Positions 23,794 through 26,716 of a stretch of 64,000 nt of DNA are shown piece by piece. Under the pieces are notes generated by a model. The model saw only the letters and a list, made by a program, of their open reading frames with translations, was not told the origin of the DNA and searched no databases. The first letter of the stretch is position 1, and each line of letters begins with the position of its first letter. Source of the stretch: Epiperipatus broadwayi (lineage: Eukaryota; Animalia; Onychophora); assembly GCA_028023455.1 (NCBI GenBank), contig JAQFVV010000006.1, positions 9,424,001 through 9,488,000 on the forward strand, read 5' to 3'. The position numbers and the translations under genes were made by a program.

Positions 23794-24039
23794 TCAATTA
23801 TATCTAATAAACTAATTCTTTAACAAGCTCATAAAAAAGTGTATACTGTGTTTATCAGTCTGATAAAAAATAATTCAACATAAACTTTTAACAAATGTAT
23901 GTGCATTATCATTATCACTTTAACCAGTATTAATCCATTTCAAGACGGACTCTGAATTTAATTCAATTTCTTAAAGTCGTAATTTCTCTTGCCCATATCT
24001 CTTCATCACAATTTATTAAATTCCCATATCCATTTAACA

Positions 24040-24477
24040 CAGGGGATAGGCAATTGTTTTGGCTCAGAGGCCACTTTGTGGAAGAGAAAGTTAGGGGAGG
24101 GCCGTACCTTTTTTTCATAACACAATAAACATACTGCTTTATTTCCTGTATTACCAAAGAAATATTTGTTTGTCCATTCTTCATTAAACACACAACATTC
24201 ATCACCGATTTTACATTTTTTCGGCGGGTTCATGGTTTCACTAAAGTTGGAAATGTATATATGTGTTAATGCAAAAACAAAATTGAAATTAACCAGATCG
24301 ACTGGAAAAGCACTGTGCATCGTATCTACACTGTGCATGTTTATTGATGTGGCCATCATAGTGGAAAATACGAGAATCTTCGGTCGCACACAGGAAGGAA
24401 ATCTCAGTTCAAGGCAGATTTTCTGATTGTCTTGGTGGGCCGCATGTGGCCCTCAGGCCTCTATTTGCCCACACCTG
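24040..24477 (-). mobile_element. hAT (Charlie/GTF2IRD2-type) deletion derivative retaining the transposase N-terminus
   Basis: TIRs CAGGGGATAGGCAA / TTGCCCACACCTG; perfect 8-bp TSD ATTTAACA; minus strand MNPPKKCKIGDECCVFNEEWTNKYFFGNTGNKAVCLLC (BED-finger-like start). Confidence 0.88.
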
Positions 24478-25385: not shown

Positions 25386-25948
25386 TATAAAATATGTGTG
25401 CATATATACATAATTTTATAATTTTAAATCAATTCAAATACAAACTGACAAAAAACAATTATTATTTTTTTATTATATTTACAGTATCTAATTAGTTTTT
25501 CTTCCATTCAGATTAACTTTTCAAGATGCCTTTAATTTAATAACTTCCTTCAATGAATTAAATTACAACATCTCCCTCCTGTGGTTATTTTTCTAATTAC
25601 AATCAAAAGGCAAGTGTACTTAACACAAGAAGATGTTATACTTCAACTAACTGATGAGATCATCAGATGAAAGCGTTTTGAAAAGTTTTCTGAATGGAAG
25701 AACACTAGAGAGAGTAAATTAATTAAATTTTAAAAAAAGTCTGTCATTTGTCAATTTTTATTCAAAATGATTTAAAATTATAATGTATATAATAGAGTAA
25801 TTAAAAATCATCATTTAAGTTATATATGAATATATGCCTAATTCTATTTTTACACACACACAATAACATATTAGACACATTAGTAAATAAGTATCAATTT
25901 GGCATATTTGATATCCAATTCTTTGTAATTTATTTTTTAGATCTAAAA

Positions 25949-26134
25949 CAATGGCTCTCAACCTTCCTAATGCCGCGATCCTTTAATTCAGTTCCTTACG
26001 TTGTGGTGACCCCAACCTTTAATTTTGTTACTGTTATGAATCGAAAATATGTATTTTCTAATGGTCTAGGCGATCCCTGTGAAAGAGTTGTTCGACCCTC
26101 AAAGGGATCGCGACCCACAGGTTGAGAACCGCTG
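25949..26134 (+). mobile_element. SPIN/URR1-like hAT MITE (186 bp)
   Basis: CAATGGCTCTCAACCTTCCTAATGCCGCG...GTTGTGGTGACCCCAACC...GCGACCCACAGGTTGAGAACCGCTG; TSD ATCTAAAA/ATCTAAAG. Family assignment is from recall of the SPIN/URR1 consensus, not from a search. Confidence 0.8.
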
Positions 26135-26716
26135 ATCTAAAGGGAATCAATACAAAAAATATATAAATGTAATGTAATTGTCAAGAACTTCGCTAACGCT
26201 ATATAACATTTACAATAACTTTCAAAATGGCTGAAGCATCCTTCATTTTTTAAGGAATTAGAAGCCATACCATATGCCATATTTTCATGCGCATTTCCAT
26301 ATAATGCACATCTGATTTTTTCGGTAAAAAATTCAGATGTTTTTTGAAAATTATTATAAAAATCGATAACAAACAATATCCACAACAATAAAAATAAAAA
26401 CAAGTATACTATAAAGAAAGCTGTTTTTTTAAATCATTTTAATCACAAAAACCTAAAAATTCCTCCTCATTTTCATTCATATCACAACTATCTTCCATAT
26501 CTGGCTCATCACTATTTTCTTCATAAACATGTCATCAATGGCACTAAATAAATATCCCACTATTCTTAAAAGATTTTATAATGATTTCTTTCCTAAAGCT
26601 ATCTGACAATTTCTTCACCCAATGGACTAATGTCGGTCTTTTTCTTGTTGGTGTTAAATCATAAACGTTCCGTTATCATGAAACTATTACAACTTTCTTA
26701 TACTCTATATATATAT

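Follow-up and report, generated by a model that had tools for sequence, protein, structure and literature searches.

The stretch of DNA analysed here, 64,000 nucleotides in length and referred to as the window, carries at positions 25949 to 26134 on the forward strand a 186-bp element which, by direct reading of the sequence, starts with CAATGGCTCTCAACCT and ends with AGGTTGAGAACCGCTG. The arms of its terminal inverted repeat (TIR) agree at 13 of 16 positions, and the 8-mers bordering it, ATCTAAAA to the left and ATCTAAAG to the right, match at seven of eight positions as copies of a target site duplication (TSD). The GC content of the element is 44.6%, compared to 27.2% and 25.1% in the 1-kb flanks and 29.2% in the entire window. 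The length of 186 bp, the hAT-type TIRs, the 7/8 TSD and the GC content above that of the flanks had all been pointed out in an initial annotation, and each was re-read in the sequence. The end motif occurs twice in the window, against a chance expectation of 0.02; the element is no chance match. Its features are the following.

25941..25948, no strand: left TSD copy ATCTAAAA, in agreement with the family target consensus NTYTARAN
25949..26134, + strand: SPIN-family MITE, 186 bp, non-coding, 5.4% diverged from the MITE family consensus
25949..25964, + strand: left TIR arm CAATGGCTCTCAACCT, differing from the published SPIN TIR CAGYGGTTCTCAACCT at two of its 16 positions
25949..26025, + strand: block A, homologous to positions 1-78 of the 2.7-kb element
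26020..26046, + strand: block B, homologous to positions 103-129 of full-length SPIN
26040..26134, + strand: block C, the final ~95 bp of full-length SPIN, 86-88% identical to bat copies
26119..26134, + strand: right TIR arm, whose reverse complement CAGCGGTTCTCAACCT is exactly the published SPIN TIR
26135..26142, no strand: right TSD copy ATCTAAAG, adjoining the right end of the MITE

Block A is 88.5% identical to the consensus of the autonomous elements residing in the same genome and 84.6-85.7% identical to the bat copies. A deletion of about 25-30 bp separates blocks A and B, and the alignment places an ATCG microhomology at the junction between blocks B and C, the site of the large deletion. 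In the 2.7-kb copies, the end that corresponds to the left arm of the MITE lies downstream of the stop codon of the transposase. Short and non-coding, equipped with TIRs and a TSD, present in high copy number and derived from an autonomous element by internal deletion, the element has the characteristics of a MITE.

The host is Epiperipatus broadwayi (Onychophora, Peripatidae), the sequenced specimen of which was collected in Trinidad and Tobago, and its genome comprises 5.6 Gb. The initial annotation had placed the element in an invertebrate genome, and E. broadwayi is indeed a velvet worm. A first-look search of this genome with the window element yielded a family of at least 1,649 candidates, and the 40 copies that were scored are 88-91% identical across the full length. 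A 25-mer from the 5' end of the element has 613 genome matches at no more than one mismatch and a 23-mer from the 3' end has 673, the control giving 0 in both cases; the copy numbers given for the MITE and for the autonomous element are lower bounds. Among 30 aligned MITE copies, 14 are bordered by a perfect 8/8 TSD and nine by one matching at 7/8. The target consensus derived from these copies is N-T-Y-T-A-R-A-N, with T at TSD position 4 in 28 of 30 copies and A at position 5 in 25-26 of 30. The copies diverge from their consensus by 6.8% on average (n=30), the value being 22.7% for CpG sites and 5.3% for all others. As a side observation, change at CpG sites is thus 4.3 times more frequent than elsewhere in these 30 copies, an excess suggestive of CpG loss through methylation in the germline of the velvet worm.

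Among metagenome contigs scanned with the 3' end of the element, one designated L066 contains a related MITE of 225 bp, the flanks of which have 54% GC. The segments that this MITE has in common with the velvet-worm MITE consensus are ~96% identical, and it is 96.8% identical to a copy from the bat Cnephaeus nilssonii. Probing the E. broadwayi genome with the L066 MITE identified copies that agree with it across the initial 158 bases and continue beyond them. These are elements of 2,464-2,808 bp with the same ends as the MITE and with TSDs of their own, e.g. TTCTAAAG/TTCTAAAG, in which a Buster-type transposase lies in broken pieces on the opposite strand. Twelve copies diverge by 5.4-7.8% from their consensus, which is 2,718 bp long and contains an open frame of 615 codons. 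The initial annotation had advised looking for a full-length SPIN transposase; what is present is a decayed 2.7-kb family, the consensus of which restores the 615-codon frame. A protein search of the genome indicated at least ~80 autonomous copies at 50% identity or more. Of the 10,643 protein candidates, 150 were scored, and no open frame in these transposase copies is longer than ~343 amino acids. The broken transposase pieces gave no Pfam domain at E<=0.01, and their family was assigned via homologues with DUF4371, FAM200-ZBED5 and hAT-dimer domains. The MITE corresponds to positions 1-78, 103-124 or 103-129 and the last ~94-95 bases of the autonomous element and is, accordingly, a double-deletion form. 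Since the divergences of the MITE copies (6.8% mean) and the 2.7-kb copies (5.4-7.8%) are alike, both were probably amplified at about the same time.

Other hAT sequences were encountered in the course of these searches. Genome searches with the Pfam hAT-dimer and DUF4371 domains led to 30 loci, none of which has SPIN ends. An unrelated and very abundant ZMYM1-like hAT (TTF zinc finger, DUF4371, hAT dimer) is present in very many near-identical copies with intact frames of 834-850 amino acids, for example at L116:1486-3990 on the minus strand (G000:C7092), and is likewise without SPIN ends. Its best matches outside the velvet worm are at 64% (Logan contigs) and at 52-60% in Pseudophryne corroboree and Ctenocephalides felis. 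This element appears young and may be active. The window itself also harbors an orphan N-terminal fragment of another Buster/FAM200-type transposase, a 127-amino-acid frame at 24006-24389 on the minus strand (…CCVFNEEWTNKYFF…AVCLLCYE…), which gave no tblastn match to the SPIN consensus.

hAT elements are defined by an 8-bp TSD and short TIRs starting with YARNG (PMC3014272). Within this superfamily SPIN has been placed in the Buster group (PMC12637253); in Anolis it has the 16-bp TIR CAGYGGTTCTCAACCT and the target NYYTARRN (PMC3014272), and SPIN_Og is 2,836 bp long (PMC10162687). In the velvet worm, 23 of 30 MITE copies have a TSD at 7/8 or 8/8 and the ends begin with CAGTG or CAGCG. The Buster target is said to follow the rule nnnTAnnn, set out by Arensburger et al. 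in 2011, and the central TA is present in the 8-bp target of the aligned copies. The right TIR arm matches the SPIN TIR exactly, and the left arm agrees with it at 14 of 16 positions in the window copy, at 15 in the MITE consensus and at all 16 in the 2.7-kb consensus, while the target NTYTARAN corresponds to the published NYYTARRN. The similarity extends beyond the TIRs, as seen in the comparisons with the L066 MITE and with the bat Hipposideros larvatus, and the 615-codon consensus frame provides an autonomous partner with a SPIN-clade transposase. The label SPIN for the bat, snake and Rhodnius copies used throughout denotes agreement with the published TIR, target, length and host list, as opposed to comparison with a labelled reference.

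For comparison at the DNA level, the sequence around named transposase genes was fetched and one copy per outside species was aligned. Over 2,686 bp, almost its full length, the 2.7-kb consensus shows 91.2% identity to the copy of Hipposideros larvatus; the corresponding values are 87-91% to that of Cnephaeus nilssonii, which has an insertion of ~830 bp, 87% to that of the snake Crotalus tigris and 81% to a deleted copy of 1.1 kb from Rhodnius prolixus. Against both ends of the full-length H. larvatus element, the MITE consensus aligns in three blocks of 92.9%, 96.3% and 92.6% identity. The likeness to SPIN, or to URR1, its mouse equivalent, which the initial annotation had proposed for the 5' and 3' parts of the window element, is borne out by these ~93% matches to the bat element ends, which reach beyond the TIRs. 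Additional SPIN-like sequences were noted elsewhere. Two contigs of ~2.9 kb each from an ENA freshwater metagenome (L138 and L139, PRJEB23036) comprise a near-whole SPIN-like element with frames of 429 and 168 amino acids, 88% identical in DNA to the velvet-worm consensus, and a fragmented copy in Hydra vulgaris (CP147949.1, L137) is 81-88% identical to it. Dozens of further contigs (L067-L115), mostly from metagenome Ga0081606, match SPIN over no more than the final 30-42 bp of its 3' end; in some, SPIN-like ends enclose longer elements of 650-1,190 bp that are AT-rich and non-coding. These are probably related families with ends in common. A scan of viral contigs for the element gave no match.

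A similar picture emerged at the protein level. A search with a 249-residue verbatim piece of the transposase found relatives in the bats Cnephaeus nilssonii (82%), Molossus molossus (79%), Myotis myotis (83%, partial) and Hipposideros (71-79%) as well as in Crotalus tigris (75%), Rhodnius prolixus (76%) and Hydra vulgaris (69%), the next family following at ~40%. For the consensus frame, identity reaches 86-92% with the fragments from bats and a snake as well as with the best cluster representatives, 83.5% with the Rhodnius prolixus fragment and 79% with the representative of a cluster containing a murine rodent protein; here, the next family stands at ~41%. The clusters represented at 86-92%, formed at 90% identity, also contain frog, lizard, snake and land-snail proteins; members of the 90% clusters include proteins of Pelobates cultripes, Bufo gargarizans, Podarcis lilfordi, Micrurus paraensis, Apodemus speciosus and Bradybaena similaris. 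This distribution corresponds to the patchy host spectrum known for SPIN (PMC11614815, PMC4350176, PMC3014272, PMC5440852). It was also observed that single 90% clusters (around P0280, P0269, P0256 and P0242) unite proteins of the snail B. similaris, the toad B. gargarizans and the snake M. paraensis, while others hold proteins of Pelobates, Podarcis, Apodemus and Hipposideros; such mixed-host clusters illustrate how widely SPIN-type transposases have spread.

The split between onychophorans and vertebrates predates the Cambrian. The intronless HSP70 of the host is at most 79% identical to any named protein, the relatives being from ticks, horseshoe crabs and oysters. The non-coding SPIN ends of velvet worm and bat are ~93% identical and the transposase reaches 86-92%. 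A decayed transposon is therefore nearer to bat sequence than a host HSP70 is to that of any named animal, which argues for a horizontal origin. Maximum-likelihood analysis places all 12 velvet-worm copies in a single star-like clade with support of 100/100, the end branches measuring 0.047-0.079 and the stem 0.042. The clade is sister to the bat and snake group, and its copies carry lineage-specific substitutions. With consensus-to-consensus identity estimated from the branch lengths of the tree, the common ancestor of the velvet-worm copies was at about 95% identity to SPIN from bats and a snake. The topology agrees with one entry, a subsequent burst of copying and neutral decay thereafter, and it also agrees with a donor outside the sampled species.

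The identification as SPIN has to be weighed against an unrelated, vertically inherited hAT family that resembles SPIN in its TIRs only. Several distinct hAT families have CAGTGGTTCTCAACC-type ends, such as hAT-N1_AC and hAT-N3_AC in Anolis (PMC3014272), and many of the metagenome contigs match across the terminal 30-42 bp and no further. However, the initial annotation had itself named similarity confined to the TIRs as the finding that would speak against SPIN, and all 186 bp of the MITE align at ~93% to the ends of the bat full-length element. In addition, the resident 2.7-kb element is 91% identical to the bat copy over 2,686 bp, and its transposase shares 86-92% with proteins of SPIN hosts versus ~41% with those of the next family. 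These near-full-length DNA and transposase identities refute a relationship by TIRs only, the probability of which we regard as negligible. Contamination of the assembly with vertebrate or insect DNA comes to mind merely since the nearest relatives sit in bats, and nothing else speaks for it. Against it, the copies are located on hundreds of large scaffolds, many of them megabase-scale, the aligned copies each have their own 8-bp TSD and AT-rich flanks, the window copy lies within a region of 29% GC on a scaffold of more than 14 Mb, and the velvet-worm copies form a separate clade with substitutions of their own. The insertion contexts refute contamination, to which we likewise attach hardly any probability.

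A more serious alternative, if still an improbable one, is that the velvet worm was invaded on two independent occasions, by the lineage of the 186-bp MITE and by that of the 2.7-kb element. Positions 93-120 of the MITE consensus (26041-26068 in the window) match bat SPIN and not the resident 2.7-kb consensus, and position 7 of the TIR is C in the MITE and T in the autonomous consensus, both of which speak for two arrivals. On the other hand, the MITE and the 2.7-kb consensus have common substitutions that are absent from the bat copies and from the L066 MITE (TTCCTTATG in the velvet worm versus TTCCTCATG in bat and L066, GGGTTGTT versus GGGTCGTT, and CCCTCAAAGG versus CCCCCAAAGG), and their divergences from the respective consensus are equal. 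A single entry, followed by change or loss of the variant that gave rise to the MITE, is the simpler explanation. Because the block at 93-120 is bat-like and unlike the resident consensus, the direct parent of the MITE is absent from the sampled autonomous copies and is a variant that is either unsampled or extinct.

Taken together, we consider it highly probable that the element in the window is a dead MITE of SPIN, a member of the Buster group of hAT transposons, and that it belongs to a family which was acquired horizontally by E. broadwayi and is now extinct there. On a single entry, one SPIN lineage would have reached the velvet-worm germline by horizontal transfer. Its transposase, presumably binding the 16-bp ends together with subterminal sequence, would have moved full-length and shortened copies in trans by cut-and-paste into NTYTARAN targets, each insertion duplicating 8 bp of the target. 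Two internal deletions would have created the 186-bp form, which, judging by the known behavior of hAT/Buster elements, may have spread better than its parent and come to outnumber it. The family would then have died out, every scored transposase copy being broken and the copies having drifted about 6-7% from their consensus. If a rate of 2-6 x 10^-9 substitutions per site per year is assumed, this drift would translate into roughly 10-35 million years. The copy in the window is, by this account, likely to be an immobile fossil insertion, and a present function is not evident.

A literature search returned no paper linking Onychophora with SPIN or with a comparable transposon transfer, and the E. 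broadwayi genome paper (Sato et al. 2023, PMC9985152) mentions neither hAT nor SPIN nor horizontally transferred elements. The extension of the host range proposed in the initial annotation therefore stands as far as this search reaches, which gave no report of SPIN from an onychophoran. We are inclined, with some reserve, to regard the family as the first record of SPIN in Onychophora and as a lineage ~5% distant from the bat and snake lineage. If true, a lineage ~5% removed from bat and snake SPIN would imply an unsampled intermediate host or vector, and a Neotropical soil-dwelling predator would join bats, opossum, squirrel monkey, Rhodnius, squamates, frogs and snails in the list of hosts. 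In itself, the element is an ordinary dead MITE, which is of note through its host alone. SPIN transfers among Rhodnius, opossum, monkey and bat have been traced to the Neotropical region (PMC11614815). The invasion of the velvet worm, complete and datable, would add an unreported phylum and a different ecology to these, that of a Neotropical leaf-litter predator that does not feed on blood, and it bears on the hypothesis of host-parasite vectors. SPIN is a textbook case of a transposon that crosses between distant animals. For the host, the family might serve as a marker of copy number and age in the repeat-driven gigantism of the 5.6-Gb genome. As a separate observation on this genome, the nucleus contains 97 or more copies of mitochondrial COX1 pieces, located at L031-L034 and at some 90 further sites. 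These copies read TGA as tryptophan, so that the invertebrate mitochondrial code is needed for their translation, and several of them are recent insertions, as they are interrupted by TGA codons only.

SPIN and its SPIN_NA MITEs have reportedly been described from tetrapods by Pace et al. in 2008, from Rhodnius prolixus by Gilbert et al. in 2010 and from squamates by Gilbert et al. in 2012. The velvet-worm family resembles the SPIN of tetrapods and Rhodnius in its TIR CAGYGGTTCTCAACCT, in the 8-bp TSD at NYYTARRN, in a length of ~2.7-2.8 kb and in the Buster-type transposase; as in known SPIN, short deletion derivatives far outnumber the autonomous copies, and nucleotide identity to the bat and snake copies amounts to 87-91%. 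In contrast to known SPIN, its host is an onychophoran, its copies form a clade of their own on a stem of ~4%, all scored copies are dead, and the dominant MITE is the 186-bp double-deletion form with C at TIR position 7. A second invertebrate parallel, likened here by description only, is the SPIN-like hAT of Biomphalaria glabrata, which has about 1,000 copies and no intact transposase (PMC5440852); it shares with the velvet-worm family an invertebrate host and a copy number of about a thousand, although the two hosts belong to different phyla. Similarly, as far as a comparison by description goes, the insect elements TcBuster and AeBuster and the reconstructed SPINon are members of this hAT subgroup and likewise show TA at the center of their 8-bp target (PMC12637253), but these elements are active or have been reconstructed, whereas the velvet-worm family is extinct in the copies scored.
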